A stretch of 64,000 bases of DNA from Hemiscyllium ocellatum (taxonomy: Eukaryota), in NCBI RefSeq assembly GCF_020745735.1, contig NC_083426.1, positions 12,152,001 through 12,216,000 of the forward strand, in the 5' to 3' direction. Shown here one piece after another: positions 4,380 through 60,809 of the stretch (position 1 is the stretch's first letter; every line of letters begins with the position of its first letter). A program made the translations under genes and the position numbers. Below the pieces are notes generated by a model. It did not search any database. It had not been told where the DNA came from and saw only the letters and a program-made list of their open reading frames with translations.

Positions 4380-4432
4380 CTGATACTAAACATTTTTTAT
4401 TCTTGCATGAGGAGAAGGATATTAGAACTCAT

Positions 4433-8204: not shown

Positions 8205-8499
8205 GGGTGGCACGGTGGCACAGTGGTTAGCACTGCTGCCTCACACCGTCAGAGACCCCACTTCAATTCCCACCTCAGGTGACTGACTGTGTGGAATTTG
8301 CACGTTCTCCCAGTGTCTGCGTGGGTTTGCTCCAGTTTCCTCCCACAGTCCAAAGATATGTGGGTCAGGTGAATTGGCCATGCTAAATTGCCCGTAGTGT
8401 TAGGTAAGGGGTAAATGTATGGGTATGGGTGGGTGGCGGGTCGGTGTGGACTTGTTGGGCCGAAGGGTCTGTTTCCACACTGTAAGTAATCTAATCTAA
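8205..8499 (+). mobile_element. HE1-type tRNA-derived SINE (inserted in CR1)
   Basis: ggcacggtggcacagtggttagcactgctgcctcac head, V-SINE-like core, aatct tail. Confidence 0.9.
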
Positions 8500-9185: not shown

Positions 9186-9506
9186 CATAAAATACTTCAA
9201 GCTTCACAGCATGTAATTCATCTTCAAGTGTTTGAGTAATACCAAGCTGTACCATCCTGCATCTTCCCTGTGAAGATCCTCCATGCTCACAATAAATACT
9301 CCTTGTGCCTTGTAATCCTTGATTGATATTCTTCCTCGCTGTCCACCTGGATCAGTTGTTCTCATCAAATATGAGCAATGGACAGTCCAACCATGACACC
9401 AGTATTTCATATTGGGCTTGAACAAAGAGTTGTATCGACAATTTATTGAGATTGATCTTCCCACAATTCCTGTTACTTTCTTGTTCGTCCACAGATATGG
9501 GTAAAG
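9186..9506 (-). pseudogene. Frameshifted V-type Ig exon of a third CD300-like gene
   Basis: Acceptor tctcctcag| followed by ..SINCRY..MKYWCHGWTVHC..EDAGWYS. One base is missing at 9244/9245 where the F-strand Cys should be; restoring it gives YSCGITQTLEDELHAVKLEVF. The exon starts with one extra base relative to A/B, and the homologous donor reads GC rather than GT. Confidence 0.8.
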
Positions 9507-35777: not shown

Positions 35778-36005
35778 CAGGTATCCCCTGCTGCCCAAAA
35801 GAAGAGCGTTCCTATGGAAATTTTTATTAGCCCAAATGGTGTAAATCGAAGAAATATTAATTTATTTCGGAAAAACTTTGCCTTTTCTCGTTAAAACAAA
35901 AATCCGATTCGATTATCTATCGGTTACCAAAAACAGGTCCTAATGTAGGTCTTTTGTAAAGGTGAAGTGGTGTAAATCGAACTTTTGAAAAGCAGTGGAT
36001 ACCTG
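35778..36005. mobile_element. About 230-bp Tigger-type MITE
   Basis: 24-bp imperfect TIRs caggtatcccctgctgcccaaaag / cttttgaaaagcagtggatacctg; TA on the right flank. Confidence 0.75.
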
Positions 36006-36048
36006 TACGTGAGACCTGTATGTGAGAATGAGAAATGTGTAGAATCAG

Positions 36049-36430
36049 AGTTGGAGAGCGATGAGTTTGAAGCAGATTGCCCAAGCCGTATGCTCCCTCA
36101 GTTAATAATGAAAATTGAAGCAGGACACTGTGACTAAAGGCTGCTCGAGAAACCAAAGAATGAAATAAGAATGGCATTGGAGGGAGAGTTTCGGCATTTC
36201 CACTGTCGGGAATGTGGTCTGTTGGGTGGTCTTCATTCTTTGGGGATTTGTGCTGTTTCAGTCACAGTGTAGTCTACAAGATAATATAAGGGAAGGGTTG
36301 TAATTAATTTATAATTAAATTAATTATTTTTCACAATATCTGTAAGCAATTTTTTGAAGTACTTATATCAATCCTCCCATGTCCTCAGAATGAAACAAAC
36401 TATTTAACTAATCACATGAGAGATTGCTGA
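36049..36430 (+). pseudogene. Orphan TM exon (36049-36290) plus short-tail exon (36389-36430), copy 1
   Basis: About 85% identity by eye to 4137-4379 and 3930-3995 (reverse strand). Contains frameshifts and stops; the donor is lost (ggaagg). Confidence 0.65.
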
Positions 36431-37974: not shown

Positions 37975-38353
37975 AGTTGGAGAGCGATGAGTTTGAAGCA
38001 GATTGCCCAAGCTGCACGCTCCCTCAGTTAATAATGAAAATTGAAGCATGACACTGTGACTAAATGCTGCTCGAGAAACCAAAGAATGAAATGAGAATGG
38101 CATTGGAGGGAGAGTTTCTGCATTCCCACTGTCTGGGATGTGGCCTATCGGGTGGTCTTCATTCTTTGGGGATTTGTGCTGAATCAGTCACAGTATAATT
38201 GACAGACAATATAAGGGAAGGGTTGTAATTAATTCATAATTAAATTAATTTTTTTACAATATCTGTGAGCAATTTTTTGAAGTACTTATATCAATCCTCC
38301 TATGTCCTCAGAATGAAACAAACCATTTAACTAATCACATGAGAGATTGCTGA
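37975..38353 (+). pseudogene. Orphan TM plus short-tail exons, copy 2
   Basis: Tandem duplicate of 36049-36430. Reads PTVWDVAYRVVFI, then frameshifts to LGICAESVTV. Confidence 0.65.
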
Positions 38354-39637
38354 AATGTTTCTGAAGTTACAAATGACACATCAAGTGGATTATTTGTTCG
38401 GAACAGCGTCAGGCTTCTTGATCCTTGCTGTAGCTGCAGCATCAAGATCTGTGTGGCCTTCATTTCAAATTGGGGCCATTCGAGTCACTGATCAACTTCA
38501 CAGCAAAGGCAGCAGTGGATCACCCAGCCATTCCAGGATGTAAATTGTGTGGTGGGTGGGGGGAGAGGAGGAGCAGCAATGTCTGTAGAAACAGTGAAGA
38601 TAGGAGCAGGAGTGAGCCATTCGACCTCTCGACACTGCCTCCCGGTCTATTATGATCACCTACCTCAGTATCCTGAGGTAGATAAGGACCTAGAAAGAGT
38701 CAATGGTGAAATCTGTGTGGAATGTGCAGTTTAATCTGGGGAAGTAGGAGTTCATCTACTTTGGAGTCTCTGAGAAGGAAGTGGGAGCAAATGGTTAATG
38801 TCAGTCAGTTAATGGCGTAACTGATGATCTAATTATGGTATTGAGAGAACACTCAGAGAGAGAATCTGAGATGGAGAAGTTGCTCTCTGTATTAGATTGC
38901 TGTCATATATATTATGTGAATAAAGAATTGGAATTGCTTTATTGTCTCTATCTCCAGATTACTATCAGAGTAGGTAAGGGCAGCCAACCAATTGAATACT
39001 ACAGGGACAGTGCCAAACGGAGCCTTAGAGAGACGTACAGGAAGACGATTAGTGCAGACCTCCATTCCATGATCAACCTCATCGCAAGCCATGATGGCAG
39101 CACAGTGAGTAACAATTAGAGATGCCTGATGCCAAGACTTGGTAAACCCAACTTCAGAAAAGATGATAAATGAGGTCGAGAGCTGCCAAAGACTTCAGAA
39201 ACAAGGAACACTTTGAGATCAGGTAAACTTTGAAGGGAAAGAAAGGCAGAACAATGGAACAGCTCAAGATATTGATGCTAAAGTGTAAGTAAAGGACCAG
39301 GGAGAATTGATTTTGAACAAGAATACAGGGTGTCTTAGAATTACAGAGTGTGTTTCCTAATTCAAGAGATACGTGCCATCTTTAAAAGTGGCTGCCATGA
39401 TCCAGTTGCAACCCTGACACACAGCATTAGTGAGAATGAGAAAGAACCATTTCTTAGTCAAGTTCTGAATCAGGCACTTAACTGGAACTAAGATCATGAT
39501 GTAAAGCCCTTCCACTCATTTTCAGAAGTGTGTTTCTGATTGATTGCTCTATTATGGTCAAAGATTGCTGCTGAGAAGGAAGTCTTCAATCTTGTAATGC
39601 AGGATATGAGATACCTTGATTTGGAGATGGGTGTACA

Positions 39638-39940: not shown

Positions 39941-41232
39941 GAATATCTTGGGTAGATTTGACACCACCAATCCATCATGCTGGCATTAATCTGAGCCACT
40001 GATACCATGTGGGGAAGGATGCCCTCAATCGTTCCTGGCAGAAGACAAACTCAATCTTGATGAACTGTAAGTAGGGTTGGTCCATGATATTTAATTGCAG
40101 TTGGATTAAATCTAAGATACAGGATTATCTCTTGTGAAACATCTTTAGTTGCATGTTGTATATAGCTTAGGGTTGGACTTTCTGGAGTTCAGAAAAGCAT
40201 AGGAAGTTGAGACGTGACCTGATAGAAGTTCATAAAATACTGAGAGATATAGATAGAGTTGATGGTAGTTGTCTTTTCCCTGAGATGGAGAATTTCAAGA
40301 CTCAGGGGCACATTTTTAAGATGAGAGGAGAGAAATTTTGAAAGCATATCAGAGGCAAATTACTGACACTCAGACACTGGTGACCTGACAGCAGAGGGGT
40401 TTCATCCCCATTGGGATATTAACTCCCAAATGTTTCCAAGTGTTCTCCAGGAGTTTACCCAATGTATTGTTTCTGTTTCCCAGACAGAGCATTGTGATGG
40501 TCCTTGTTGGTTCAGTCTCTGGGTAATGACTTCAATGACTTTCCTTCCATATTAAGGGTTAAGGTGGGGGCACTGCCTTCAGCATTGTGGCTGGGGATGA
40601 GCACGGTTGATGAAGGGCGTCAGCCCCTTTGATCTTCTCAAAGGTGAAACCCAGCATGGTTCATCAGACTCACTCATCATCAACTACGCCCTGGTGAATA
40701 CAAAGCTCCATGTCAGTCGGTTCACCAGAGAGATCCTCACCTTGGAACAGAAGCTCACTCCCAGTTACTCAATCACAGTTCACTTCCCCCTTAATTTTCT
40801 CAGTTTTTGAGTTCCTTTCTCTGCCTGAAATTGACCTTATGTCTTGTTTATTTGGATCTTGTCCTTCAACTGCATGTCTAGAAGTTTAGATTGTGACAGA
40901 ATAATTACTCAGCAATAACAAGAGTCATATTATGTTAAAAAAAGCAAAATTATTAGCAGCAGTTTAATGTTAATTGCAGAACAAATTTTCATAAAGCAAA
41001 ACTCTTTGTGTCATGAACAGTTGATATTTTTTAACAAAGGAGAATGAGCCATTTGTCATTTACCTGAAAATTCAATTTACTTTGGTCACCATTATCAAGA
41101 ACATTTGACTTTTTAACTATCTTGATTTCATAACCTCCTATTCTTGGGCTAGGAATTAATTTAATTCTGCTGTTAAAACATAACTGACAGGAGAGTAATT
41201 TCTTCGGTGTCAGATTTTATCATCTAGTTTAC

Positions 41233-41270
41233 TGTGGTTTTATAAGCTGTCTTCCTCTATCCTCTTCCTC
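41233..41270 (+). promoter_or_regulatory. Candidate myeloid-type proximal promoter of receptor A (RUNX plus two ETS cores)
   Basis: TGTGGTT at 41233 and two CTTCCT motifs about 80-115 nt upstream of the ATG. The ETS pair is conserved in paralog B (52664-52684). Confidence 0.4.
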
Positions 41271-41348
41271 ATTTACATTCTTGTAAACATTGTGTTACAT
41301 ACTTTGTTGTGAGAAAGAAAAGCTGGAGGACGAACATCAGGAACTGAA

Positions 41349-41406
41349 ATGATCTTTGCAAATATAATGTTGTGGGCTTCAATTCTCCTCATCTATTCCA
41401 TTCCCG
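41349..41406 (+). CDS. Leader (signal peptide) exon of CD300/pIgR-like receptor A
   Basis: ATG at 41349 (second in-frame ATG at 41367) encodes MIFANIMLWASILLIYSIP, then a phase-1 donor G|gtgagt. Paralogous to 52788-52824, and the phase matches the V exon at 47206. Confidence 0.85.
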
Positions 41407-42279
41407 GTGAGTGACCATCTTAGTTGCTTATTCACATTTTCAATGTTTGTTTATGTCCACTATCTGGTTTATACAGCAGAGATATTTAAATCTTTGGAGA
41501 TATGTAATGGCACAAAGGAGGATCTTATGACATAGTGGGGAACATCATTGTTGCTGTGACAGATGCCATGAGTCGATTCTCCCTCCAGCACATTTTGCAA
41601 AGGAATGTGGATGCTAACAGAGCCAAACAGGTTCATGATCAACCTGCATTTCCTTCCATCATGGCCATGACAGGGAGCAGGAGTGGGTGTGATTCCAGGC
41701 CAGCATTGTCCAATGCAGAGTGTGACAATGCTGTCACTTTAAAGCGTTATTTATCCTGTTTTTCTTTAGGAGAGATTGTGAGGCAGAGGTACGGAGCTGT
41801 CTCTAAGAACGTAAACAATTTGACAGGGCTTAGTTTGTTTTTAAAGTTGGAACAATGGAAGTAGACTGAGTCACAGACCAGGCTTTCTAGGTTTTTTTGT
41901 AGATTTTAGGTTTTATTTTAAGCAGAAGCCAGTGGGATCTCAAAAGATTTGAGAGCTTCAGTGAATGTCTCCTGGCTGCTACACTCTGAATTTTCTCTTG
42001 ATATTTTTTCCTCCTGGACTGGAGAACTGCATGTGAGAATCTGGGTTTGAATTTTACCTTCTGCCAAGGCGTGTGTTTATGGAATGTTACTATATTGGAA
42101 CAGTTCATTAGTAATAGGTTCTGTACCTATTATTCAATCAAGCTTTCTAATAGTTAGGTTAATCTAGTTCCTGCTTCTTTCTTTTGCATTTTAACTATAA
42201 CATTTAAATAAATTATGTTTTGTTTAATGTCGAGTAGTTTGTTCAGTCGCATCACATCTGGAGCATGGCGCCTCACAAA

Positions 42280-43860
42280 GGACTGATTAGGGATAGTCAT
42301 CATGGCTTTGTGTGTAGGAAATCATGTCTCACAAACTTGATTGAGGTTTTTGAAGAAGTAATAAAGAGGATTGATGAGGGTAGAGCAGTGGACATGATCT
42401 ATATGGACTTCAGTAAGTGGTTCAACAAGGTTCCCCATAGGATACTAGCTAGCAAGGTTGGATCTCATGGAATACAGGGGCAACTAGCCATTTGGATAGA
42501 CAACTGGCTGAAAAGTAGAAGACAGAGAGTGATGGTGAGAGTTGTTTTTCAGACTGGAGGCCTGTGACCAGTGGAGTGCCACAAGGATCGATGCTGGGTC
42601 CATTACTTTTCGTCATTTATGTAAAAGATTTGGATGTGTGCAAAAGAGGTACAGTTATTGAGTTTGTAGATGATGCCAAAATTAGAGGTGTAGTGGACAG
42701 CGAAGAAGGTTTCCTCAGATTACAATAGGATCTGGATCAGATGGGCTAATGGGCTGAGAAGTGGCAAGTGGAGTTTAATTTAGATAAATGTGAGGTGCCG
42801 CACTTTGGGAAAGCAAATCTTAGCAGGACTTATACACTCAATGGTAAGGTCCTAGGGAGTATTGCTGAACAAAGAGACCTTGGAGTGCAGGTTCAATGCT
42901 CCTTGAAAGTGGAGTTGCAGGTAGATAGGATAGTGAAGAAGGCGTTTGCTATGCTTTCCTTTATTGGTCAGAATATTGAGTACAGGAGTTGTGAGGTCAT
43001 GTTGCGGCCGTACAGGACATTGGTTAGGCCACTGTTGGAATATTGCGTGCATTTCTGGTCTCCTTCCTATCGGAAGGATATTGTGAAACTTGAAAGGGTT
43101 CATAAAGATTGACAAGGATGTTGCCAGGGCTGGAGGATTTGAGCTACAGGGAGAGGCTGAACAGACTGGAGCTGTTTTCCCTGCAGCATCGGAGGCTGAG
43201 GGGTGACCTTATAGAGATTTACAAAATCATGAGGGGCATGGACAGGATAAATAGAGAAAATCTTTTCCCTGGGGTGCAGAACTAGAGGGCATAGGTTTAG
43301 GTGAGAAGGGAAAGATATTAAAGAGACCTAAGGGGCAATTTTTTCACGGAGAAGGTGGTACGTGTATGGAATGAGCTGCCAGAGGATGTGGTGGAGGCTG
43401 GTACAATTGCAACATTTAAAAGGCATCTGGATGAGGATATGAATAGGAAGGGTTTGGAGGGATAGGGGCTGGGTTTTGGCAGATGGCACAGCGGCTCAGT
43501 GGTTAGCACTGCGGCCTCATAGCACCAGGGTGCCAGGTTTGATTCCAGCCTTGGGCGACTGTGTGGAGTTTGCACATTCTCTTTGTGGGTGTGCTCCGGT
43601 TTCCTCCCACACTCCAAAGATGTGCAGGTCAGATGAATTGGCCATTCTAAATTGCCCATAGTGTTATGTGCGTTAGTCAGAGGGAAATGGGTCTGGGTCG
43701 GTTACTCTTCAGAGGGTCGGTGTGGACTGGTTGGGCCGAAGGGCCTATTTCCACACAGTAGGGAATCAAATCTAATTTAAATTGGTTTGGGATATCTGGT
43801 TGGTATGGATGAGTTGGACCGAAGTGACTGTTTCCATGCTGTACGTTTCTATGACTCTAT
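42280..43860 (+). mobile_element. CR1/HER1 RT and 3' end
   Basis: SHHGFVCRKSCLTNLIEVFEEV; YMDFSK; LVRPLLEYCVHFWSP. Confidence 0.88.
43482..43780 (+). mobile_element. HE1-type SINE in a CR1 tail
   Basis: Head, core and tail. Confidence 0.88.
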
Positions 43861-44689
43861 CTACCTTTAAAATATGAAAAAGTTAACATTTTGGCTAGAT
43901 TCTTAAAATATTTTGAGGGATTCTGGTGTAGTCTGTAACATGGATGGCAGCCCTTATATTACAACAATTAGCTTTGAGCTAGTGACCTATTTCCTGGAGA
44001 ACAAGCTGCAGAAAACCGACACAGAATGTACTTTGTCTGCTCCATATATCTCTAAATACGGAAATCTTCGAAATTTTAAGGAACGAATGGAAAATTACAT
44101 GAATAATACCAGGAAATATTGCACATTCTTTTGAAAATATTATCATAAAATGGAATATAGTTACCAAGTAGAGTCTAGATTAGAGTGGTGCTGGAAAAGC
44201 ACAGCAGGTCAGGCAGCACCCGAGGAGGAGGAAAATCGACGTTTCGGGCAAAAGCCCTTCAACAGGAATAGAACATCTATTCCTCTGGTTTCCAACATCT
44301 GCAGTCCTTGTTTTTACCTTTATATAGTTGCCAAGTAGTTTAGAGCAGCGTTATTAATTAAGGATGAAATGAGAATGACAATATGATTTTTTAAAAGTGA
44401 CACAAGCAGCAGCATCAAAACAAGAGTCCATTTTCATCAGTCCAAAGTTTTTAATGTAGTCAGCTGCTCAATATACACTGAAAACCAGAACGACAATAAG
44501 CCTTCAAACAAAATATCATGATTTTGTAATTATTTATTTTATTTTCAAAATGCCATTCATTAAATATTATTTAATGAAGTTCGATAACAAAAGTAGAAGG
44601 TTGGTTTATTTTCTGTTTCCATTTCTGGAGATAAGTGGTCATCAATATCCACTACAAACCCACAGTTATATATCTGTATATCCTGACTC

Positions 44690-45835
44690 CCTGCTTCCTG
44701 AAAAGACACTGTTCCCTTCTCCCAGTTCCTCTGTCTCCATCGAATGTCAACCTCCAGAAGGATTCCTCCCAGATATCCACTCAACTGAGGATTCCCCACC
44801 AACTGTGATTGACAGGGCCCTCAGCTGTGTCTGTCCCATCTCCCACACTCCAACCCTCAACCCCTCTCTTCTGTTCCACAACAGTGACAGAGTCCCCTTC
44901 ATCCTCAGCTACCATCCCACCAGCATCCACATTCAGAGGATCATTAGCCTCCATTTACATCACCTTCAGCAGGATGCCGCTACTGACTCATATTCACCTC
45001 CTCACCCTGTCACCCTTCTGGAGCAGCCATTCCCTCCAAGACACTCTGGTCTACCTCTCCTTCACTCCCAACAAATTCCCATACACCCACGGCACCTTCC
45101 CATGTAATCAAAGAAGGTGTAGCACTGAACAGTTTGCTTCCTCCCCCTCTCAGTATCCAAGGCCCCAGACACACCTTCCAGGTGAAGCAGCACTTTACCT
45201 GCACTTCACTCAACTTAGTCTGCTGCATTCGCTGCTCTCGAAGTGCAGACTGGGCGACTGCTTTGCAGAACACCTCCATTTTGTCTGCAAAGATGACCCG
45301 AAGCTTCCTGTTGTCTGCCATTTCAATACACAACCAGCATCTCGGTCTCGTACTTTCGACAGTACTCCTGCGAAGCGAAGCTCAAGCTGAAAGAACAACA
45401 CCTCATTTTCACCTCTTCAGGAATCAGTATCGAGTTCAGTAATTTTAGGGCCTTAGTCCCTTCCCCCAACCCCCACACTCCAGGCCTTGTTATCACATGG
45501 GCTGCTACATCACAACCCATTGTCAGCCATTAACAATCCCTATTAGCGGTTATTGATTCTCCTAGGCTGACCTTTATCCAATGCTCTGTCTGCCCAATTG
45601 TTTTAATGTCTTCCTTCTGGACTCCATCTCCACATAGTGTTCAGCAATGCCCCCCTCCCTCCAACCTATTCTAGACCATATGTATTACCCTTTTCTTTGC
45701 TCCTATCAGTTCTGAAGAAGGGTGACTGGACCTGAAATGTTAACTCTGATTTATCTCCACACTTGCTGCCTGACCTGCTATGTTTTTCCAGCAATCACTG
45801 ATTTTGTTTCAGCTTTCCAGCATCCACAGTTATAG
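44690..45835 (+). mobile_element. Penelope-like element 3' fragment (RT C-terminus, GIY-YIG remnant, hammerhead, tail)
   Basis: DRVPFILSYHP; TFQVKQHFTCTSLNLVCCIRC; CRLGDCFAEHL. Confidence 0.8.
45708..45744 (+). ncRNA. CpG-decayed hammerhead motif at the 3' end of a Penelope fragment
   Basis: AGUU CUGAAGA A GGGU-gacugg-ACCU GAAA UG UU AACU, downstream of the GIY-YIG-like remnant. Confidence 0.5.
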
Positions 45836-47205
45836 AATCATAGAGTCATACAGCACAGAAACAGACCCTTTGGTCTAACTAGTCCATGCCAATCATGTTT
45901 CCAAACTAAACTAATCCAACCTGCCTGAACCTGGCCCATAACCCTCCAAATATATTCTATTCATGCACTTATTTAAATGTCTTTTAAATGTTATAACTGT
46001 ACCTGTATCCAACATTTTGTCTGAAAGTTCATTCCAAGCATGAGTTACTCACTGTGTAAAAAAAATTGCCTTTCATGTCTTTTTAGAATCTTTCTCCTAT
46101 CGCCTTAAAATTATGCTCCTCGTCTTGAATACTCCATCCATAGAAAAGGACAGTTTCTCATAGAATCCTGACAGTGTGGAAACAGGCTATTTGGCGCAGT
46201 AAGTCCACAACAACCCTTCGAAGAGTATCCCACCCAGACCCATTTCCCTACCCTATTACGCCACATTTCCCTTGACTAATGCCCCTAACCTGCACATCTC
46301 AGAACACAATGGGGCAATTTACCATGCATAATCTACTTACCTAGCACATCATTGCACACTTACACTTAAATTCCTCTCTGCTATTTTATTCAAGAATTAT
46401 TCTCCCAACAAGACCATTGGTCTGGTATTTATTGAAATAAAGTCTACCTGGTCATCAACAGGCTGCTCCTCCTCTACACTGGGACACAGTGTGGCAGCAA
46501 TTTAAGCATTTTCTCAGGAACCATCTCACTGGAACAATCAGTAAATTACTTCTGTTATTTTACTCTCCTTAACCTGACAACAATGTGTGATCACAAATAA
46601 TCCTGCCTTTACTGCCCTCAAGGTCCTGCACATTGAGCTCTCCCTCCCATCGTGAACCATCCCTTGCTGAACTTCAGTTCTCTTCTTTCCCACTTAAGGT
46701 CTCTCATCAACTTCCTGGGTCACGTGTTGTATTTGCCTCTTGAGCACTGAAAATGTAGCCGCTGAGCACATCATGAGTCTCCACACAATCCCCCCCACCC
46801 CCCCCACCCCCGCATGAAACCCTCCTTCTCCGGTCGGAGTAAGGACCCTTCAGCAACTGTGCCCTCCTTCACACTGATCCCCAGCCAGCTCCAACCCAGG
46901 CCTGTCGCTCAGGCTGCTCTCCGGGGGACAACATTTCGATGATGTCACACACAGTAGAGTTAGAGCCCACAGTGGGCAGCACAAGCCCAATTTCAAGATT
47001 GTCCCGAAGCTCGAACAGTGGAGTAAGAAAATATCCCGATTGTTTCAATCATTCCCTGGGAATCTGGCACATCCTGAGGCTCTGATAAGGGTTTATATTA
47101 CTGATTACCTTTATCACATACTGGATGGAACATAGCTGATTAAAATATATCTGTTTGTATTAGGCTGTTCTTTCCAGTTAAATTTTTGAAATATTGTCTC
47201 CTCAG

Positions 47206-47520
47206 TTTCAGGTGCTTTATGGGCAGAAGAAAATGTAACGGGAATTTTGGGAAGAGCGATCACAATATCTTGTCACTACGAAGCACGGTGGTACCAGTCA
47301 CACATGAAATATTGGTGTCATGGATGGACTCGTCTGTGTCAGGTTATAGCAATGACAAATTGGCCAAATGGGAGAATATCAATCACTGACAACAAAACAC
47401 AAGGAATATTTCTTGTTACAATGAAGAATCTTCAATGGAGGGATGCAGGATGGTACAGCTGTGGGATGGAGATTCCTGGTCTTGACCCAATGTTTAATGC
47501 AAAGCTGCACATCTCTGATG
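47206..47520 (+). CDS. V-type Ig exon, receptor A (CD300/CMRF35/pIgR-like)
   Basis: Acceptor tctcctcag|, donor G|gtaaat, 315 nt, phase 1-1. Encodes ITISCHY..MKYWCHGWTRLC..GRISITDNKTQGIFLVTMKNLQWRDAGWYSCG. The extra WC..C cysteine pair and DAGWYxC are hallmarks of CD300/pIgR/TREM-type V domains. Confidence 0.93.
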
Positions 47521-47562
47521 GTAAATGTCTCAGTGATTTTTTAAACATTACTTTCCACTATA

Positions 47563-47871
47563 TGGGCGGCACGGTGGCACAGTAGTTAGCACTGTTGCCT
47601 CACAGTGCCAGAGACCCAGGTTCAGTTCCTGCCTCAGGAGACTGACTGTGTGGAGTTTGCACATTCTCCCCGTGTCTGCGTGGGTTTCCTCCGGGTGCTC
47701 CGGTTTCATCCCACAGCCCAAAGATGTGCAGGTTAGGTGAATTGGCCATGCTACATTGCCTGTAGTGTTAGGTGTAGGGGAATGTGTCTGGGTGGGTTAC
47801 GCTTCGGCGGGTCGGTGTGGACTTGTTGGGTAGAAGGGCCTGTTTCCACACTGTAAGTAATCTAATCTAAT
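47563..47871 (+). mobile_element. HE1-type SINE in the V-C2 intron of receptor A only
   Basis: Flanked by the direct repeat actatat; absent from the 133-nt intron of receptor B. Confidence 0.9.
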
Positions 47872-47979
47872 GACTATATGTCTGTTCATTGTTTAATCCT
47901 GGAAGAAAGATTATCAAGTGTTGGGAGCATTTGATTTTTGATGCAATTCAATTTCTCAATAATTGTTTCTTTCCCACAG

Positions 47980-48303
47980 AAGCCGTCTCGGTTCCTGGGC
48001 TTCGATTTTTATCCCAACCAAATGTCTCATGTTCTGGGGGTTCAGTGACAGTCTCCTGTGAGTCTGCCCGAGGATCTCTCCCCATTCACTACACATGGTC
48101 TGAGAAGACGCCATCACAAGATTCAAAGATCTCTGACACCAATAAACTGGATCTACATTGTCAATCCTTCACACAGCAACATCATCAATATTACTGCACA
48201 GCCTCACATACTCAGGGAACAAAACCCAGTGAAATGGTTCATGTCTCAGTTACCAATGTAGCAGAGAAGGGTTGTAGTTACATGATAACAATCAGCAGCA
48301 TAG
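47980..48303 (+). CDS. C2-type Ig exon, receptor A
   Basis: Acceptor tttcccacag|, donor G|gtaaga, 324 nt, phase 1-1. Encodes GSVTVSCESARGSLPIHYTW..QYYCTAS, with the B-strand Cys, Trp and YYC of an Ig C2/I-set fold. Confidence 0.9.
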
Positions 48304-48560
48304 GTAAGATTTATACAAACACTGAGTCCTGCAGGTACTTTTAATGACTATTCAAACTACTCATGGGTCAAGCTTCTTACATACTTACAAATAACTGCAC
48401 CTTATCACATTATGTCTCTTTAATATTTAAACAATTTTGAAAATGGACAAAATTGTAATAACGCGCAAGATAATGCATAAATTATGCACTCCTGTTTTGT
48501 GTTACATCTCACAGCATGTGTGTGTTATACCTTTAATAGATAAAGTCATCAGAGCTAAAA

Positions 48561-48792
48561 ATATGTTGCTGGTTAAAGCGCAGCAGGTCAGGCAGCATCC
48601 AAGGAACAGGAAATTCGACGTTTCGGGCACAAGCCCTTCATCAGGAATAAGGAAAGTGTGTCCAGCAGACTAAGATATCTTAGTCTGCTGGACACACTTT
48701 CCTCATTCGTGATGAAGGGCTTGTGCCCGAAACGTCGAATTTCCTGTTCCTTGGATGCTGCCTGACCTGCTGCGCTTTAACCAGCAACATAT
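48561..48792. repeat. 232-bp spacerless palindrome of Penelope-like terminal sequence
   Basis: 116-bp arms centred on GAT|ATC (48676/48677), with two mismatches. Confidence 0.92.
48613..48648 (-). ncRNA. Minimal hammerhead ribozyme motif in the left arm of the palindrome
   Basis: AUUC CUGAUGA A GGGC-uugu-GCCC GAAA CG UC GAAU. Confidence 0.7.
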
Positions 48793-50889
48793 CTCTGTGT
48801 GGCACCATCCCATGCCAATGTCATTCTGACAATGCTGTTTGAGGTAGAACAGCATAGAATTAAACCTGTGTTGCTGTCCTAAAGATTTCACCCATTCACT
48901 TTTTTTTTGGATATGTATAGCTCCCAAGCATGCATTAATAAATATTTAATAAAGAAACCTGAATCTGGCCTGGACTAAACAGGAAATAGAACATACAATC
49001 ACTCTTTTGGGGTCTCTCACAAAACATAGGAAGCACCAGAGGAGGTGGAGTTATTCCAGGTCACTGTCACTTTGACCTCCACATGGGGAGGATTAGGGCC
49101 AATAAGGGCTTTGTAATTCTCAAAGACATGGGCTCTATTTGAAATTAGGGACATAATGGCCATAGGGAGAGAATGAACAGAAATGGTGAGATGGCAAAAG
49201 GTCATCGGATCCACAGGGACAGCAACAATTCAGGGAGGAAGAAGGATCATCCTGCACCACAGGTAGAGTCTGTTGTTAATTCACAGAGATACCCCACTCC
49301 TGGTGTCTGCAGGATATGGAGCACCTCATCAAAGCCACTAATAGTTCTGAAGAACAGTCAACGGACCCAATACAGAGACTACTTTCTCACCACAGACACT
49401 GCCAGACCTGCTGTGTTTCTCCAGCAATTTCTGTTTTTGTCACAAAAACACTCAGTTAACGCTTCACCAATCCTGACCCAGTCGCTGTGCAGTAACTGTG
49501 TAAAATGACAGACACCCAATTGCAGAGTGGGAATGGAGTCATTTATTCATATTTTGGGAGGGACAGTGGAAGGTGGCTTGCAGTAAAACTCTATGATTTT
49601 GAAACCTAGTCGGGGCAATTGCACCCATGCATCCACTGATTCAGTCCCACCACTGGCATCAACTTACACTTCAACTACATTGTCCAGAAATAAACATTAC
49701 AGGTGATGGCCTCAAGCAATCATTGACTATAACATTGTTCACCCTCAGCATCTTGTTAACAAGGTCAATGTAATCAGACAAGATAATTTCAAAGTGCCTC
49801 TTGGGTTTGGTATTTCTGTAATGCACTGCATAGCAATCATTGGAAGACAGCAATTCTCAGCTGCTACATTCACACACTGAATTGTGAGTTCATGACAAGA
49901 TACAGCCAGTTCTTCCATAATGTGATGGTTGCAATTCTGCATTATAGAAAAATTATGCTTTTGAAATAGCACTCTAAGTGTTGGCTGTTTAAAAGTTTTA
50001 GAAGCTCCTGCTTTAGAAACAGCATCCCCAATGCATCAATCATATAACAGGGAATTTGTGTTGACCAAGCGCACATTCTAACAGAATGATCTGTAGTCTG
50101 CATTGTGTAAAGGTGCCTTTTCTTCAGGAAGGAGGAGTCTATAATAGTGACTTACTGTCAGAATTCTACAACCCCCAATGGAGCCCGAAATCTTGGCTGT
50201 ACAGATGACATTTGGATGAAGATTCACACCTCAGACATCCGAATGGAGTTATGACATGGACAATATTTGCCTTGAATTTTCTGCCAGTGCCTACATTTCA
50301 ATGAGTGACTGAGCAGCTGTGTGGTATCTCCCACTCTCAGACACACAAATGCAGTCAAGCTGTGTCTGCTGCCATTTTCCCCAGATGACAGCTATTCATA
50401 TCTGTCCCCGAGCTGTGGCAGGGAGAGACACTCAGTCCAGGAACGAGAATGTCCCACCATCACTGGTTCACCCCAGGTGCAGGATTGCAGAAGCTGCACT
50501 CACATTGCTTTCAGAATGTCCCCATCACCAACTTACAGAGTTTAGGAACAGGAAAGGATTTCCACTCCAACAATGCTCAAACTGTATGTGACCATCAATG
50601 CCAGATTTTGGAGGTATGTCTTCGATATACTGGGATGTCCCACAATACTGAGATATTAAAAAGGTCACTGGGTCCTGCTCCGTCCCGCGGGTCTCAGACA
50701 TACAGGGATAGCTGTTGGGAGACAAGGAGTATCCTCTCAAAACTTGGCCAATGGCATCTCTATGAAACCCATCGACTGATGAACACCAATGACTACAGTG
50801 ATGGAGTGCAGCTGCGTGCTCATACTCAGCAGACACTGAGTGTGCTAGACCTGGACATCGTGGGAAATTAGGGGGACATTGAGGGACCA

Positions 50890-52335
50890 CTTGCAGAAAT
50901 ATTTGTATCATTATAAAAACTGTTGAGGTATTGAATGACTGGAACATATTGAATGTTGTGCTTTTGTTTAAGGAGGGATGTAAGGAGTAGCTGGGAAGTA
51001 GATACCTGAGTGCAATTTCGGTGGGAGGTAAGTTGTTGGAGGTGATTCTGCAAGGTAAGATTCATAAAGCATTTGGTGAAGCAAGGAATGATCAGGATAG
51101 TCAACATAGTTTAGTGTGAGAGAAATCCTGTCTCACAAACTTGATTGTGTATTTTAATGAAGTTACCAAGAAGATTGATCAGGACAGAGTGGTGGATGTT
51201 GTTTACTTGGATTTTAGTAAAGCCTTCAACAAAGTTCTGCATGGCAGCTTAATTATGAAAGGTAGATCACATGGATTTAGGGTGAGCTTGCCAATTGGAT
51301 CCAAAATTGGCTTAACGGGAGGAGACAGAGAGTGATTGGTGGAGAGTTGTTTTTCAGACTGGAGGCCTATGACACGTGGTGTTCCACAGAGATCAGTGCG
51401 GAGTCCACATTTATTGGTCATTTATATAAAAGCTTTAGATATGAATATGGGAGGCAGGGTTAGTACATTTGTGGATGACACCAAGATTGGTGGTATAGTG
51501 GACTGTAAGAAATTATTTAAGGTTACAAAGATAGCTTGCACAATTGGGTCAATGGTGTGAAGAGTGGGAGATGGAGTTTAGTTTGGATAAATGTGAAGTA
51601 TAGGATTTTGGTAAAACAAAAAAAGACAAAAGTTACACAACTGAAAGTAGGCTTTGGGCAGTGTTGTAGAACAGAGAGACCTAGGGATTCTGGTTAATAA
51701 TTAATTGGAGTTGGCATCACATGTTGTTAGGGCGGTTAAGAAAGCATTTAGCTTGCTTGCTTTATTGCTCAGACTTTATTGGAGGATAGGATTTGGGACT
51801 TTTTTTGCATTTGAACCGAACATTGGTGAGATCTCTTCGGGAGGATTTATCCAGTTCTGGTCTCCATATAAAAGGACGAATATTGTTAAGCTGGTGAGGA
51901 TTCAGAAGAGATTTACCAAGAGTTGCTGGGAATGGAGGGGTTGAATTACAAGGAGAGGCTGGATAGGCTGGGACTTTTTTCCATGGAGCATAGGAGGTTG
52001 AGAGCAGACCTTTTTGAGCTTTATAAAATAATGAGGTTTACAGAAGAAGTGAATGGTGGGGGTCCTTTCCCTGGAGGAGGGATTTCAAGATGAAGGGCCA
52101 TATTTCTAAGCTGAAAGGAGAATGTTTGAAAAATTCTTCACAGAGAGTGGTGCACGTGGGGAATGAACCTCCAGAGGAAGTGGTGGATGTGGGTACAGTT
52201 ACAACATTTAAAAGGCATTTAGATAAGTATAAATAAATGATAGAAGGCTTTGGGGTCAGTGCAAGCAGATGGGACCCATTTAATTTGACGTTATGGGTAT
52301 GGACGAGTTGGACCGAAGGGTCTTTTTCCATATTG
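50890..52335 (+). mobile_element. CR1 RT and 3' end, decayed
   Basis: VDVVYLDFSKAFNKV; FVDDTKIGG. Confidence 0.85.
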
Positions 52336-52663
52336 TGTAATGCCATGACTCCATGACAACGTATTAATAAAAACTCTATTGTTAGTTGCAGGAATAATTT
52401 TCATAGAAGAGAACTATTTTTGTGAAAATCTATGTCAAAAATTTCTAACGTGGAAGAATGAACCATTTCTAGTGCAGCTGAGATTTCAAGCTGAATAATG
52501 AGCTTGGGTCACCATTACCCACAGCATCTGACTCTTGAACTGTCTTGATTTCAGAATTTTCTATTCATTCAATGAAAAGTAATTTATTTCTTCTGTTAAA
52601 CATCACTGACAAGAGACTTCAGGGTCAGTTTCAACATCTGGCTCACTGTAGTTTCAGAAACTG

Positions 52664-52684
52664 CCTTCCTATATCCTCTTCCTC
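52664..52684 (+). promoter_or_regulatory. Candidate proximal promoter ETS motifs of receptor B
   Basis: ccttcctatatcctcttcctc, aligning with 41250-41270. Confidence 0.35.
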
Positions 52685-52787
52685 ATTTCAATTCTTGTAG
52701 ACGTTGCATTATACACTTATTTCAATGTGAGAAACAAGAGTTGAGAGACTGACATCAAGAACTGAACTGATCTTTGTGAATAACACA

Positions 52788-52824
52788 ATGGGGATTTTGA
52801 TTCTCTTCATTTGTTCCATTCCTG
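52788..52824 (+). CDS. Leader exon of CD300/pIgR-like receptor B
   Basis: Encodes MGILILFICSIP, then a phase-1 donor G|gtgagtgacc. Flanks align with receptor A leader region. Confidence 0.85.
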
Positions 52825-52899
52825 GTGAGTGACCATCTGAGTTAGTTGCATGTTCAGATAATCAATGTTTGTTGAAGTCCACTCTCTGCTTTATACAGT

Positions 52900-52978
52900 A
52901 AAAAAAATCACACTATAAGCTGGTGTTGTGTGATTTTTAACTTTGTCCACCCAGTCCAACACCAGCTCCTCCACACCA
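52900..52978 (+). mobile_element. Short Penelope-tail insertion in intron 1 of receptor B
   Basis: 13-bp direct repeat TGCTTTATACAGT (52887-52899, 52979-52991); the site is empty in receptor A near 41465. Confidence 0.75.
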
Positions 52979-55412
52979 TGCTTTATACAGTGAAGATGCT
53001 TCAATATTTGGAGACATGTAAAGGCACAAAGGAAGCTCTTGTGACACGATGGGTAACATTGTTATTGCCATGACAAATGCTCAGTGTTCGATTCTCATTC
53101 CAGCACATTTTGCAAAGGAATGTGTATTCTCACAAAGCCAAACAGGTTCATTATCAACCTGCAAATCTTTCCAAAATGTGCAGGGCAGGGAGTAAGAGTG
53201 GGTGAGGTTCCAGATCAGCCTCATCCAATGCAGAGTGACACCCCTCACATTACAGCAACTGGTTCAGACGAATGACCTGTTCCTGGAAGAACAAGCTGCG
53301 GAAAACAGACATGATTCAAGTATTTCACCTCTTGAGTACTTTTAAAGGATTCCAGGAATGGGATAAGGGGCTGGAGTTGGGGCTTTGTCTGTGTGGGATG
53401 ATCTTTGGAGGGTCAGTGCAGACTCAATGGGCTGAATGGCTTATTTCTGCAACATAGGGATTCTACAATTCGATTCAAGTATTTCACCTATTGAGTACTT
53501 TTAAACTCTCTCACAGCATGTGCTTTGTCTGCCTCAGGCAACTCGAAATATCTAAGACTTTGTTATTTAAAGGGAATGTTGTATCTTCTTCTAAAAATGT
53601 TATCCTACCGTGGGCTACAGTAAACAAACAATGTAGAGGTGCATTAACTATTTGGAATGAAATAAAAAGAACATAATTTTGTTTAAACTGAAAAAGCAGA
53701 AAAATTAAAATGAAAACCTATTTCAATCAGATGCAAACTTCTAATGTTGCTTGACTTTCAAAATCCATTAAAAGGTGGAGTGGTCAGAAGCTCCCAAACA
53801 AAACAATTTTGATTTTTCATTATTTACTTTCCTATTAAAATGCCATTAATTCAATATTTTTTACTGAGGCTATTGCATAAAAATAGCTGGTTGGTTTATA
53901 TTTCACCTCCCACAAGAAGCCTTTTTACTTTCAGTCTTTGACCAACTTTAACCAAGTTATTTATGCTTTTTCAATCCCATTGATTTTAACATTGCAATGT
54001 AACATTGTAATAAAGCTATTGTTCAACATTTTCACCTCTCCTTCTTTGTGATAGATTTTTTCAAGATAATTTCAAGCACATATTAATAAAATTCCCAATG
54101 TTGCATGACCCTTGACTGCAACTCAGTGAATTCTGTGAGATCAAATCTGCCTGGAACATGTTGTGGTTTATGCCCACTCATTTCATGCAGAGTACTTTAC
54201 AGACAGAGAACTGAAGCGTGCATCTGTTTCACAAACCCCTTTATTTCAAAGCTTCCTCTTTCCAAGAAGGTTTCTTTCTCCTGACTTCCATCAGCCTTCC
54301 TCATTCATGTATTCCTCATTCCTCATTCTCTTCTCTCCAGTCTACATTTCAATTCCATTCTGTCATTTCAGTCAAGAATCATTCCCCAAACAAAGTTGGT
54401 CTGGTAGTTATTGAAGTAAATGAGAAATTGAGGACTGCAGATGCTGGAGATCAGAGTTAGAAAGTGTGGCAAAGCACAGCCCGTCAGGCAGAACCTGAGA
54501 AGCAGGAGATTCAATGTTTCTGGATAAGCCTTTCATTAGGAATTTATTGATGTAAAGTCTACCCAGTCATCAACAGGCTGTTCCTCTTCCACACCAGGAC
54601 AAAACGTGGCAGCAATTTAAACATTTTCCCATGAAGCATCTCATCTGGAACAATCAGTAAATTAGTTCTGTCGTTTTATTATCTATACAATTACAACAAT
54701 GTGTGATTACAAATAATCCTGCCTTTACTGTCCCCAAGATTCTGCACATTGATTTCTCTCTCCCATCGTGAACCATCCTTTGCTGAACTTCAATTCTCTT
54801 CCTTTCCCAATTGAGGTCTCTCATCATCTTCCTGGGTCACCTGTTGTATCTGCCCATTGAACCCTGAAAATGCAGCCCTGGAGCCCACCATGAGTCTACA
54901 CACAGCCCCCCTCTCCTCCCTGGATGAAACCCTCCTTCTCCAGTTGGAGTAAGGACCCTTCAGCACCTGTACCCTCCTTCACACTGATCCCCAATCGACT
55001 CCAATCCAGGCCTGTCACTCAGGCTGCTATCCAGGGGGACAACATTTCGATGATGGAGTTAGAGCTCACAGCAGGCAGCACAAACCCAATTTCAAGATTG
55101 TCCCAAAGCACGACCAGTGGGGTAAGAAAATATCCTGACTGTTTCAATCATTCCCTTGGAATTTGGAACATTCTGAAACTCTGATAAGGGATTAGATTCC
55201 CTACAGTGTGGAAACAGGCCCTTCGGCCCAACAAGTCCACGCCGACCCTCTGAAGAGTGACCGACCCAGACTGCTACCCTATATTTACCCCTCAACCACT
55301 GTTCCACGTCAATTGCTCTCACCGGAAGGTGGATGTAATGTAGCTAATCAAAATGTGTCTCGGTATATTAAGCATCTTTTCTAGTCAAGTGTTTGACATG
55401 TTTTCTCCTCAG

Positions 55413-55727
55413 TTTCAGGTGCTTTATGGGCAGAAACACTTGCAACGGGAATTTTGGGAAGAACAATCACAATAGCTTGCAATTACAATTCACGGTGGTA
55501 CCAGCCAAGCATGAAATATTGGTGTCACGGATGGACTCGTGATTGTAAGGTCATAGCAACGACAAATTGGCAGACTGGGAGAATATCAATCACTGACAAC
55601 AAAACACAAGGAATATTTCTTGTCACAATGAAGAATCTTCAATGGGGAGATGCCGGATGGTACAGCTGTGGGATTGACACTCCTGGCCTTGACCCACATT
55701 TTAATGTAAAGCTGCACATCTCTGAAG
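55413..55727 (+). CDS. V-type Ig exon, receptor B
   Basis: Acceptor ttctcctcag|, donor G|gtaaag, 315 nt. Encodes MKYWCHGWTRDC..DAGWYSCG; 82 of 104 aa identical to receptor A. Confidence 0.93.
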
Positions 55728-55860
55728 GTAAAGGACTCATTTTATTTTAAAATTACTCTCTGCTGATATATCTGATCAGTGTTTTATTCAGGAAGAAAAC
55801 TGACAAAGCATTGGAGGATATTTGATCTTTGATCTCTCAATAATTGTTTCTTTCCCACAG

Positions 55861-56184
55861 AAGCCGTCTCTGTTCCTGGGCTTCGATTTTTATCCCAACC
55901 AAATGTCTCATGTTCTGGGGGGTCAGTGACAGTCTCCTGTGAGTCTGCCCGGGGATCCCTCCCCATTCACTACGCATGGTCTGAGAAGATGCCATCACAA
56001 GATTCAAAGATCTCTGACACCAATAAACTGGATCTACATTGTCAATCCTTCACACAGCAGCATCATCAATATTACTGCACAGCCTCAAATACTCAGGGAA
56101 CAAAACCCAGTGAAATGGTTAATGTGTCAGTCAACAATGTAAGACAGAAGAACTGCAGTTATAGGATACAGATCAACAGCATCG
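55861..56184 (+). CDS. C2-type Ig exon, receptor B
   Basis: Acceptor tttcccacag|, donor G|gtaagt, 324 nt; nearly identical to the receptor A C2 exon. Confidence 0.9.
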
Positions 56185-56989
56185 GTAAGTGTGATGTAAA
56201 CAATGTTTATTTATTATCTCACTCTGAAAAACTGTAATTGAGAAAATGCACTCCATTTGTCTTATCGTCTGTTCTGAACAAAGCCAACTCTTTGCACTGT
56301 GCTTGGAAAATGAGGAGGAGCATAAAATACTATCCACAGCATGCATAAACATTTCAACAACTCCAATAACCTCTGCAAATTAAAACAATGATTGATTAAC
56401 AAATTATTTGCATTTTTCTAAGAGATGGAATTATCAAATTCAGTACATGACTATTGTGTCCAGATTTTGGACAGGTATTGGGGATAGAGAGGAGATCAGT
56501 TGTACAATGAAATACCTGTAAATATTGCCTGCAGCCATTTCCTGATCTGATCTGTTTGAGCTGTCAGAGAAGAAGTAAGTCAGCATCAAGTCGAAGTGAC
56601 ACACGGGAACTGTATTTGGAACTATCAGCAGCAGCTCATGTGGCTGCACTCTCACTTTTGATGCCAGCATGTTGGGGCTTCCAGTTCCCCTTCGGGGTTA
56701 AAATTCAGCTGGATCCCACTGCCCAGCAGAGAGAAGTAATGCTGTGCTGTGGCAGGTGAGACAGTGTCGATGAGGTGAGAAACTGAGAACCTGTTCCCCA
56801 TTTAGGAATGGCACCATTTGTAAACTAATTACAGAATAATGGTTCTCCTAGTGTCTGAGCAAGCATTCATTCCTCAATCAATGTTACTAAAAACAATCAG
56901 ATTTTTGAGAGAATTATTTCAATGGCATTGACTGCTGCAAATTAACTTTTACATTAAAAATCAAAAGAACTGTGCATGCTGTAAATCAG

Positions 56990-58915
56990 AAACAAAAACA
57001 AAATCCAAAAGGATTTTATGAATCTCTTAAGAACAAAAGGGTAACTAGAGAGATAATATGACCAATCCAAGATCAACAAATTGGCCTTTGTGTGGAACCA
57101 CAGGCAATGGGCAAGTACGAACCGAGTATTTTGCGTCAGTTTTACTGTTGAGAAAGACCTGGAGATACAGAATGTGGGGAAATAGATGATGACATCTTGA
57201 TGATGTCCATATTACAGAGGAGGAGGTGCTGGATGTCTTAAAGTGAATAAAGTTCCCAGGACCTGATCTGGTGTACCCTCGAACTCTGTGGGAAGTTAGG
57301 GAAGTAATTGTTGGGCATCTTGACGAGATATTCATACCAAAGATAGTCACAGGTGATGTGCCGGAAGATTGGTGATTGGCTATGCAATGCCACTATTTAA
57401 GAAAGTTGGTAAGGAAAAGCTCAGGAACTATAGGCAGGTATTGGGCAAGTTGTTGGAGGGTATCCTGACGGACATGATTCATATGCATTTGGAAAAGCAA
57501 GGACTGATTATGGATGGTCAACATGGCTTGGTGCGTGGGAAATCATGTCTCATGAGCTTGGTTGAGTTTTTTGAAGAAGTAATTAATGAGGGCAGAACAG
57601 TGGATGTGATCTACATGGACTGCAGTAAAGCTTTTGACAAGGTTCCACATGTTAGACTCGTAAGCAAGGTTAGATCATGTGGAATAGAGGGAAGAGAGAG
57701 GGTAATGGTGGAGGATTGCTTTTCAGACTGGAGGCCTGTGACCAGCGGTGTGCCACAAGGATCGGTGCTGGGTCAACTGCTTTTCATCACTTACATAAAT
57801 GATTTGGATGTGAACATATGAGGTATGGTTATTAAATTTGCAGATGACACCTAAATTGGAGGTGTAGTGAACAGCGAAGAAAGTTATCTCAGACGACAAT
57901 GGGATCTCGATAAGATGGGCCAGTGAGCCGAGGAGTTGTAGATGGAGTTTAATTTAAATAAATGTGAGGTGCTGCATTTTGGAAAAGCAGGACATATGCA
58001 TTTCATGGTAAGGACGTGGAGCGTGTTGCAAAACAAAGAGACCTTGGAATGCAGGTTCGTAGTTCCTTGAAAGTAGAGTCTCAGGCAAATAAGGTAGTGA
58101 AGAGATGTTTAGTATGCTTTCCTTTATTAGTCAGAGCATGGACACAGGAGTTGGGAGGTCGTGTTATGGCTGTACAGGACATTGGTTCGGCTACTTTTGC
58201 AATATTATGTGCAATTCTGGTCTCCCTCCTATCGGAAAGATTTTGTGAAATTTGAAAGGGTTCAGAAAAGATTGACAATGATGTATCCACGAGTGGAGGA
58301 TTTGAGCTACAGGGAGAGGCTGAATAGGCTGGGGCTGTTTTCCCTGGTGCATCGGAGGCTGAGGGGTGAACTTATGAAGGTTTATAAAATCATGTGGGCC
58401 AAGAGCAGAGTAAATAGACAATATCTTTTCCCTGGGGTGGGAGAATCCAGAACTAGAGGACATAGATTTAGGGTGAGGGGGGGGGGAAAGGTTTAAAAGT
58501 GACCTAAGTTGCAATGTTTTAAATCAAAGCTTTGTGCGTGTATGCACTGAGCTGCCAGATAAGTGGTGGAGACTGGTACAATTCCAACATGTGAAAGTTA
58601 TGATTTGGAGGAGCCGGGGTTGGACTGGCTGCATGACACCGTAATTTTTTGCTATAAATTCTGCGTCTGATGGTCCTGCTTCACAACCACCTGATGAAGG
58701 AGCACACTTCGAAAGGTAGTGCTTCCAGATAAACCTCTTGGACTATAACCTGGTGTTGTGTGATTTTGAACATATAAAAGGCATAATTAGCAAGGGTTGA
58801 GAGGGATAAGGGCCAAGTGCTGGCAAATGGGACTAGATTAGGTTAGGATATCTGGTCAGCAAAGATGAGTTGGACCGAAGGGTCTGTTTCTGTGCTTTAT
58901 TTCCCTGTGACTCTG
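56990..58915 (+). mobile_element. CR1 RT and 3' end with a Penelope insertion near 58590-58775
   Basis: QHGLVRGKSCLMSL; SGVPQGSVLGQLLFITYINDLD. Confidence 0.88.
58688..58721 (+). ncRNA. Degenerate hammerhead motif, second family
   Basis: CAC CUGAUGA A GGAG-caca-CUUC GAAA GG UA GUG; core intact but the stem III palindrome is broken. Confidence 0.45.
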
Positions 58916-60095: not shown

Positions 60096-60809
60096 CATAT
60101 TTAAGGAGCAAATTAACTCCAGCCTTTTTAGGTAGAAATACCAAGGTGGAGGCAAAAATCCAAATCATGTTGAAAGCTCACCCAGCCATCACAGGATATA
60201 ACAGGAGAGACCACTGAATCCCCCAGGAATACATTGTCCAGTGGGGACAGTGACCAGCTCAGTGTCTGGAACATTGTTTTTACATTTGACAAGGACGAGA
60301 AGGGGGATCTCAGGAATACAGTCCCACCAACCTCAGCCTTTAACAAGCATACAGCAATATCAATGTCCAGGTGGAGATCCAAACACAAATTATGTTGAAG
60401 CTAGGTCACTACCACATCTCTCCAGACAGGGGGAGTTAGAGAGAAATGAATTCAACAAAATCTATTATTCACAACAAGTTGTGACGTTCCATCAGTGAGG
60501 AGAGCTTTCATGGTTGTCTGCAAGTGAGACTCAGATGAAACTGAATATTTTCTTATGTCTCAATAGGAGAGGAATATTTTTGTGACAATTCCTCAACAAT
60601 TTCGGCAAAAACATCACGAACAACAAGAACATCTTCAGAATCCAAGTCTGTCACTAAAAGGTAGATCATTTTCATTGTCAATATTTCATTGATTCCAAGT
60701 GAGAATTGGTGATTTAGCATAAAGGTTTACAATAATTTCCACTTTCAGACTATGATTTATCAGAATGGAAAAGGTGGGTGATTGTGTACAGAGCAATTGT
60801 AGAGTCATA

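Follow-up and report, generated by a model that had tools for sequence, protein, structure and literature searches.

The MDIRs, or modular domain immune-type receptors, were described in the clearnose skate (Cannon et al. 2006, Immunogenetics 58:362; cited in PMC3031540). Secreted immunoglobulin (Ig) paralogues that lack a transmembrane (TM) segment and are encoded by separate genes within receptor clusters are known from two further systems, LAIR2 and LILRA3 in the human leukocyte receptor complex and SITR in carp (PMC3031540). Here we analyse a stretch of 64,000 nucleotides from the epaulette shark, Hemiscyllium ocellatum (RefSeq assembly GCF_020745735.1, contig NC_083426.1, positions 12,152,001–12,216,000 of the forward strand). 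The whole of this stretch is referred to as the window, and coordinates are counted from its first letter. The locus belongs to an array in which MDIR-type genes for immune receptors stand in tandem. Two of its cassettes, hereafter A and B, each consist of a leader, a V domain of the CD300/pIgR type and a C2 domain of the FCRL type. With moderate confidence, we read A as a maintained, anchor-less duplicate, that is, a TM-less and most likely secreted paralogue.

The initial annotation of the window had credited cassette A with intact splice signals, frames open through the C2 exon and a good donor at 48303, and all of these were confirmed. The features of A and of the DNA that follows it are:

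40965..41348, + strand: region upstream of A (promoter and 5' untranslated region, 5'UTR), ~72–75% identical by blastn to 52377–52787 upstream of B; 5' edge of the duplicated unit
41349..41406, + strand: coding part of the A leader exon, MIFANIMLWASILLIYSIP plus 1 nt, with the donor GT at 41407
42278..43440, + strand: fragment of a long interspersed nuclear element (LINE) in intron 1 of A, found by self-blastn; reverse-transcriptase remnant (Pfam RVT_1, E 1.6e-4, at 42265–42567)
47206..47520, + strand: A V exon, with Pfam V-set and PDB matches
47980..48303, + strand: A C2 exon, ending in the phase-1 donor ATAG/GTAAGA (the slash marks the splice site)
48304..48344, + strand: A read-through tail, 13 codons past the donor, GKIYTNTESCRYF, then TAA at 48342–48344
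48325..52376, + strand: spacer between the duplicated units, with no family exon; it holds a palindromic element, a LINE fragment (51027–52231) and other repeats
48937 and 48948 (48937..48953), + strand: pair of AATAAA hexamers, candidate poly(A) signals, ~600 nt beyond the stop of A

All junctions of the A and B cassettes are in phase 1 with AG/GT sites, and the spliced frames are open. At its start A has an extra in-frame ATG (41349) where B and the relatives have CTG; the methionine normally used in the family is matched by the second ATG, at 41367. The stop at 48344, predicted for a transcript that reads through the C2 donor, is present after the 13 codons listed above. The AATAAA motifs reported near 48938–48953 are also present, but at a density no higher than chance: seven such hexamers occur in the 4.5 kb, against ~5.5 expected by chance, and five in the 4.4-kb intron of B itself. 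The pair was therefore rejected as evidence for a 3' end. Among the repeats, copies related to the LINE fragment of A intron 1 were retrieved by self-blastn at 51027–52231 and 57444–58597, and an insertion resembling a short interspersed nuclear element (47560–47870) lies in the V–C2 intron of A and is absent from the 133-bp V–C2 intron of B.

Self-comparison of the window delimits the duplicated unit to 40965–48324 in A and 52377–56205 in B, the likeness ceasing 20 bp past the C2 donor. Between this donor and the start codon of B (48304–52787, + strand) no family stalk, TM or ITIM (immunoreceptor tyrosine-based inhibition motif) exon was found by tblastn with at least 30 relatives, or by three profile hidden Markov models (HMMs) run against the six-frame translation, and a hydrophobicity scan of the same interval revealed no TM segment of a family exon. 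This agrees with the earlier statement that the 4.5 kb before the B leader contain neither a TM nor an ITIM exon of the family, and the search that could have overturned it, for a TM exon private to A, came back empty. Relaxing the thresholds of the hydrophobicity scan and the profile HMMs did not yield a private TM exon for A in the window either. The predicted product of A thus combines a signal peptide and Ig domains, its stop codon precedes any TM segment, and A lacks a TM exon of its own. Within the spacer a 232-bp palindromic element (48561–48792; 98% self-complementary), probably a repeat resembling miniature inverted-repeat transposable elements, lies 220 bp beyond the stop of A; partial copies of it occur at 20.9 kb and 44.2 kb.

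Cassette B differs from A in what follows the C2 exon. Its parts within the window are:

52788..52824, + strand: coding part of the B leader exon, MGILILFICSIP plus 1 nt; the usual leader of the family, identical to the start of P0212
55413..55727, + strand: B V exon, 100% identical to P0212 residues 14–117
55861..56184, + strand: B C2 exon, 100% identical to P0212 residues 119–225
60567..60660, + strand: B stalk exon, which completes G and continues with EEYFCDNSSTISAKTSRTTRTSSESKSVTK; phase 1 in, phase 2 out

The stalk exon is bounded by the acceptor tcaatag/ and the donor aaaag/gtagat. It was matched by tblastn with the tails of close relatives as queries (E 1e-8) and by the stalk profile (E 8.8e-8), for which it is the sole significant match within the window. 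P0212, a public gene model of H. ocellatum, contains the B stalk word for word and proceeds beyond it to SYVVWDVIRWVLFTVLVICSVSVTI, an arginine-bearing TM segment (VWDVIRW...) whose sequence is absent from the window. The last 3.3 kb of the window yielded no TM exon of B, even at relaxed thresholds of the hydrophobicity scan and the profile HMMs. The initial annotation, which left B without a TM exon, was accordingly right for the window itself, but it overlooked the private stalk at 60567–60660, and the P0212 model places a TM segment past the window end. B can thus be described as a conventional activating-type MDIR receptor gene with leader, V, C2, stalk and then a TM exon beyond the end of the window, the last of these resting on P0212. 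The apparent lack of an anchor in B is due to the missed stalk exon and the window edge, and the practical outcome is a correction, since the picture of 'cassettes without anchors' arose largely from these two causes. The other units modelled in this species (P0212, P0016 and P0211), including the next gene downstream, have a stalk and a TM segment of their own; only A is without them.

Assignment of the array to the MDIRs is based on both domains. The V domain of A matches the Pfam V-set family (E 2.4e-10) and, among PDB sequences, is closest to pIgR (E 2e-36) and CD300LF/CLM-1 (E 1e-16). It contains four cysteines, allowing for an extra disulfide pair, and a KYWC motif within KYWCHGW. V domains of the CD300/pIgR type are marked by a YWC motif, described in PMC3031540, together with a second disulfide pair, and the A domain has both. 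The C2 domain of A matches FCRL5 in the comparison with PDB sequences (E 3e-29), and a Pfam search with the C2 exon returned Ig families only, all below threshold. Protein searches produced hundreds of relatives in sharks and rays under mixed automatic names (pIgR-like, FCRL5, CMRF35-like), which are explained by the resemblance of the V domain to pIgR and CD300LF and of the C2 domain to FCRL5. The clearnose-skate proteins MDIR2, MDIR3 and MDIR5 were recovered with E values of 1e-77 to 1e-164 and 49–58% identity when the close paralogue P0016 was the query. With the A exons themselves, MDIR5 (P0169) is 47% identical in V (E 4e-25) and 50–64% identical in C2 (E 1e-27 to 7e-39). Besides this homology of the Ig domains, the cluster shares with the MDIRs the presence of both activating and inhibitory members assembled from repeated modules, as judged from the arginine TM exon in the B model P0212, an ITIM exon on the minus strand (6583–6302) and relatives with multiple cassettes. 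The genes do not belong to the mammalian CD300 family proper, in which a single V domain directly precedes the stalk and TM segment, whereas in A and B the V domain is followed by an FCRL-type C2 domain.

How the product of A might be made can be outlined as follows. Cassette A is an old partial duplicate with nothing but promoter, leader, V and C2. Its C2 donor would be left unspliced, so that translation would run 13 codons into the intron and terminate at the TAA at 48342–48344, and the RNA would end at a poly(A) site further downstream. The predicted product is a V-C2 protein of 245 amino acids with a signal peptide, which would be secreted. Such a protein could bind the ligands of the membrane-bound neighbours and may act as a decoy or in an opsonin-like role. 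The exon anatomy, the lack of private anchor exons in A, the private stalk exon of B and the signs of upkeep in the frame of A are direct observations; beyond them we infer a predominant read-through transcript of A and a secreted, functional protein. Two possibilities raised at the outset, a secreted V-C2 decoy and a truncated duplicate, both describe this reading, with the homology ending 20 bp past the donor and a 245-amino-acid public model ending at the read-through stop.

This public model is found in the gene table near P0212 as a separate + strand gene with a V-set/Ig product of 245 amino acids, and it ends 4444 nt before the ATG of B (52788). Counting back gives 48344, the read-through stop of A, and the lengths agree as well, as 697 nt of A coding sequence and 38 nt of read-through make up 245 codons. 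Ending this gene at the read-through stop, the public annotation has already modelled A as a V-C2 protein with no TM segment. In the same annotation B is fused to its downstream neighbour and A is not joined to B. A counterpart of A is also found in a second genus. Protein P0001 of the bamboo shark Chiloscyllium plagiosum is 95% identical to the C2 domain of A and has the C-terminus GKFYTNTEACRYF; its tail and its stop position coincide with those of A. The 3' end of the C2 domain of A further bears the signature VAEKGCSYMITISS, which is common to P0001, differs from B and is absent from the other members of the clade that were fetched. Because P0001 has the tail and stop of A, this A-type 3' end arose before the two genera separated. 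A contig of Chiloscyllium punctatum (L001) is B-like at 86% identity and is therefore a paralogue. Predicted products consisting of V and C2 only are also present in other sharks and rays (P0006, P0008, P0202 and P0204).

A number of points weigh against a secreted product. The C2 donor of A is a strong consensus (G/GTAAG) kept in both species, and an unpaired donor of this strength is apt to be joined to the following acceptor instead of being passed over. Downstream of A, the density of AATAAA hexamers is that of chance. P0001 starts at an internal methionine of the V exon, and the bamboo-shark copy may thus be incomplete; moreover, it is located on a 3-kb contig, and so short a contig forces a read-through ending whatever the true transcript may be. 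The 245-amino-acid model, for its part, may rest only on homology and ab initio completion, and P0001 too could be driven by homology. Finally, gene conversion from functional paralogues could keep the exons of A intact without any selection on A.

The last point leads to the best surviving alternative, which we consider possible though doubtful: A would be a non-functional truncated duplicate, silent or with its RNA degraded, whose exons stay intact through recent or repeated gene conversion. The array does hold clear relics, namely two TM copies (36.2 and 38.2 kb) with a frameshift and no donor, the broken remnant of a TM exon on the minus strand at ~23.9 kb, and ITIM and TM exons out of order at 6.5 and 4.2 kb, and the beginning of the bamboo-shark P0001 model inside the V exon would fit a relic as well. 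The substitutions between A and B are also compatible with conversion. In C2 the number of synonymous substitutions per site (dS) is 0.09 in the core versus 0.72 at the 3' end, and as the core is nearly homogenised, gene conversion may contribute to its state. Against such decay stands the condition of the gene. The ATG, the five splice sites and all 232 codons of A are intact despite ~14–25% divergence from B in non-coding sequence, and in simulations of neutral decay along the A lineage, set to half the divergence of the introns, 0.1–1% of runs kept ATG, frame and splice sites intact together. Across 639 exon nt A and B are not separated by a single indel, compared with ~1 per 100 nt for the introns alongside, and the ratio of nonsynonymous to synonymous substitutions between the two is 0.70 in V and 0.32 in C2. 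A tree built by maximum likelihood from 55 V-C2 cassettes places A within the clade of bamboo and epaulette sharks (Hemiscylliidae), and the terminal branch of A (0.15) is ordinary, that of B being 0.20 and the family median 0.14. The signature VAEKGCSYMITISS, common to A and the bamboo-shark protein, argues in the same direction, as conversion by neighbours would erase it, and the public annotation calls A protein-coding. On this sequence evidence, A is not decaying and its coding frame shows signs of upkeep. In line with a relic, no run recorded as RNA contained the exons of A, although none of the runs listed is recorded as RNA at all; two small runs from the same organism (X1 and X7), which are only guessed to be RNA, contained 0.08–0.21 of the A or B words, a share that carries no weight for either reading.

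It is unlikely that A and B instead form one nested unit, in which transcripts from the A promoter would be spliced from 48303 to the V acceptor of B at 55413 or, less likely, to the stalk of B at 60567. The products would be a four-Ig receptor (V-C2-V-C2-stalk-TM) or the A ectodomain on the B anchor, with the B promoter giving the two-Ig form. What survives of the shared anchor proposed in the initial annotation is this weaker version. The three junctions concerned are all in phase 1, and the joined frames are open both from A C2 to B V and from A C2 to the B stalk. Furthermore, the predicted junction ...ISSI/VSGALWAE... resembles the C2-to-V junction of skate MDIR5, ...MNNT/VSGALWAE..., in a protein of 501 amino acids with the order V-C2-V-C2-stalk-TM, and the internal V domains of MDIR3 start with VSGA(L/V)WA. 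The donor of A is strong and conserved, and gene models lend some precedent: P0216 of Chiloscyllium punctatum links two V-C2 cassettes through the second leader exon with no TM segment between them, and P0212, P0016, P0211 and P0213 splice an upstream gene into the 5'UTR/leader of the next, so that read-through between neighbours is at least modelled. However, such fusion models may be prediction artefacts of a tandem array, and the annotation that joins B to its neighbour leaves A apart from B. B also retains the usual leader of the family and a conserved upstream region of its own, and when the acceptor used in the fusion models is transposed to the position before the B leader (AG at 52737–52738), the frame of A stops after four codons. 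In its most specific form, which we regard as improbable, this alternative makes A and B a nested two-promoter locus, where A transcripts would skip the acceptor-less leader of B, join A C2 to B V and so provide one anchor for two-Ig and four-Ig receptors. Were it true, the locus would be a living intermediate of domain gain in MDIRs by tandem duplication of leader-V-C2 units.

A further alternative, variable cassettes spliced to shared TM and tail exons as in the clustered protocadherins, calls for several promoter-bearing units that lack private 3' exons and is not supported, because B (stalk at 60567–60660, arginine-bearing TM segment in P0212), the next gene and the other modelled units each own a stalk and a TM exon.

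The public models of the array deserve separate mention, as they fuse neighbouring genes and carry misleading names. P0212 continues from B into the 5'UTR, leader, V, C2, stalk and TM segment of the next tandem gene and is thus a fusion of neighbours; the same applies to P0016, P0211 and P0213. In three species, models of this kind (P0212, P0016, P0211, P0213 and P0216) pass through the 5'UTR and leader exon of the next gene, which are read in frame as ...ERLTSRTELIFVNKTMW...; the equivalent region in B is 52737–52824 of the window. These fusions represent either common read-through transcripts of the array or model artefacts. Some models (P0216 and P0049) skip the TM exon and have the stalk joined to a downstream exon (HN.YTKTLGEHHGLY...), which would predict soluble isoforms in the same family by a second route.

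The rest of the window (40% G+C, eukaryotic, with a masked run of N at 32730–32979) contains further fragments of the family:

36138..36269, + strand: degenerate TM-type pseudo-exon; 74% identity to the 4.2-kb TM region, 1 bp deleted, GT donor missing
~38064–38195, + strand: second degenerate TM-type pseudo-exon; 72% identity to the 4.2-kb TM region, 1 bp deleted, GT donor missing
9494–9246, minus strand: V exon of a third family member; its identity to the first V domain in P0167 and P0170, two models of H. ocellatum, is 87–88%
6583–6302, minus strand: ITIM-bearing exon of the third member, found by tblastn with relatives
4214–4158, minus strand: TM-type exon of the third member (the 4.2-kb TM exon)

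The two pseudo-exons had been listed initially as a 36/38-kb type of family TM exon. They are indeed TM-derived copies on the + strand, but both are relics, given the 1-bp deletion and the missing GT donor. They belong to tandem copies of a TM region (36000–36520 and 37930–38470, + strand) situated 1.94 kb apart, which are probably relics of a unit that once preceded A. Another TM-type remnant, on the minus strand at 23870–23996, is broken: it reads VAWNLMQWVLFIL and, after a frameshift, VVTAVSVTTYTQKSK, and behind it lies a degenerate match to 'HNVYTKTLGEHHGLY...', the exon that in relatives comes after the TM exon. The third member (3900–9500, minus strand) is of a different subfamily; its exons are in the wrong order for one transcript, with no C2 exon between them. 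Taken as a whole, the array has the ordinary character of a cluster of MDIR-type receptors evolving by birth and death.

Among described systems, the MDIRs are the closest to the genes of this window, with which they share a CD300/pIgR-like V domain, an FCRL-like C2 domain, a cysteine-bearing stalk, a charged TM segment or an ITIM tail, and the repetition of V and C2 modules. The combination of V and C2 is the MDIR layout of cartilaginous fish, as CD300 has a single V domain, pIgR has V-type domains only and the FCRLs are devoid of a CD300-type V. Cassette A departs from the MDIRs in ending after one V-C2 pair, without stalk, TM or tail exon. Two of the skate proteins, MDIR4 and MDIR5, are reportedly without signalling motifs.

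In the clustered protocadherins and UGT1A, variable first exons are spliced to shared constant exons. The likeness to these loci is confined to A, which has its own promoter, leader and ectodomain and an open phase-1 donor but no private 3' exons. In contrast, every other unit examined (B, the next gene, P0016 and P0211) has private stalk and TM exons. In addition, the downstream unit offers internal acceptors, such that splicing from A adds domains instead of swapping them, and no shared constant region exists in the window.

LAIR2, LILRA3 and SITR resemble A in each being a TM-less Ig paralogue inside a cluster of membrane-bound activating and inhibitory receptors. They belong to other gene families, and their secretion has been shown experimentally, whereas that of A is deduced. 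In SITR, moreover, a CD300-like V domain is paired with a second Ig domain (PMC3031540), albeit in reversed order (V/C2 then V). If A is indeed secreted, the epaulette shark and the bamboo sharks possess a soluble form dedicated to that role, kept beside the membrane-bound paralogues of an activating innate receptor. This would place soluble paralogues of the decoy or opsonin type in the oldest receptor clusters of jawed vertebrates, and would offer an easily expressed two-domain protein for finding MDIR ligands. A TM-less secreted paralogue is an ordinary outcome in such gene families, and the sharks would have arrived independently at the same arrangement as mammals with LAIR2 and LILRA3 and carp with SITR.

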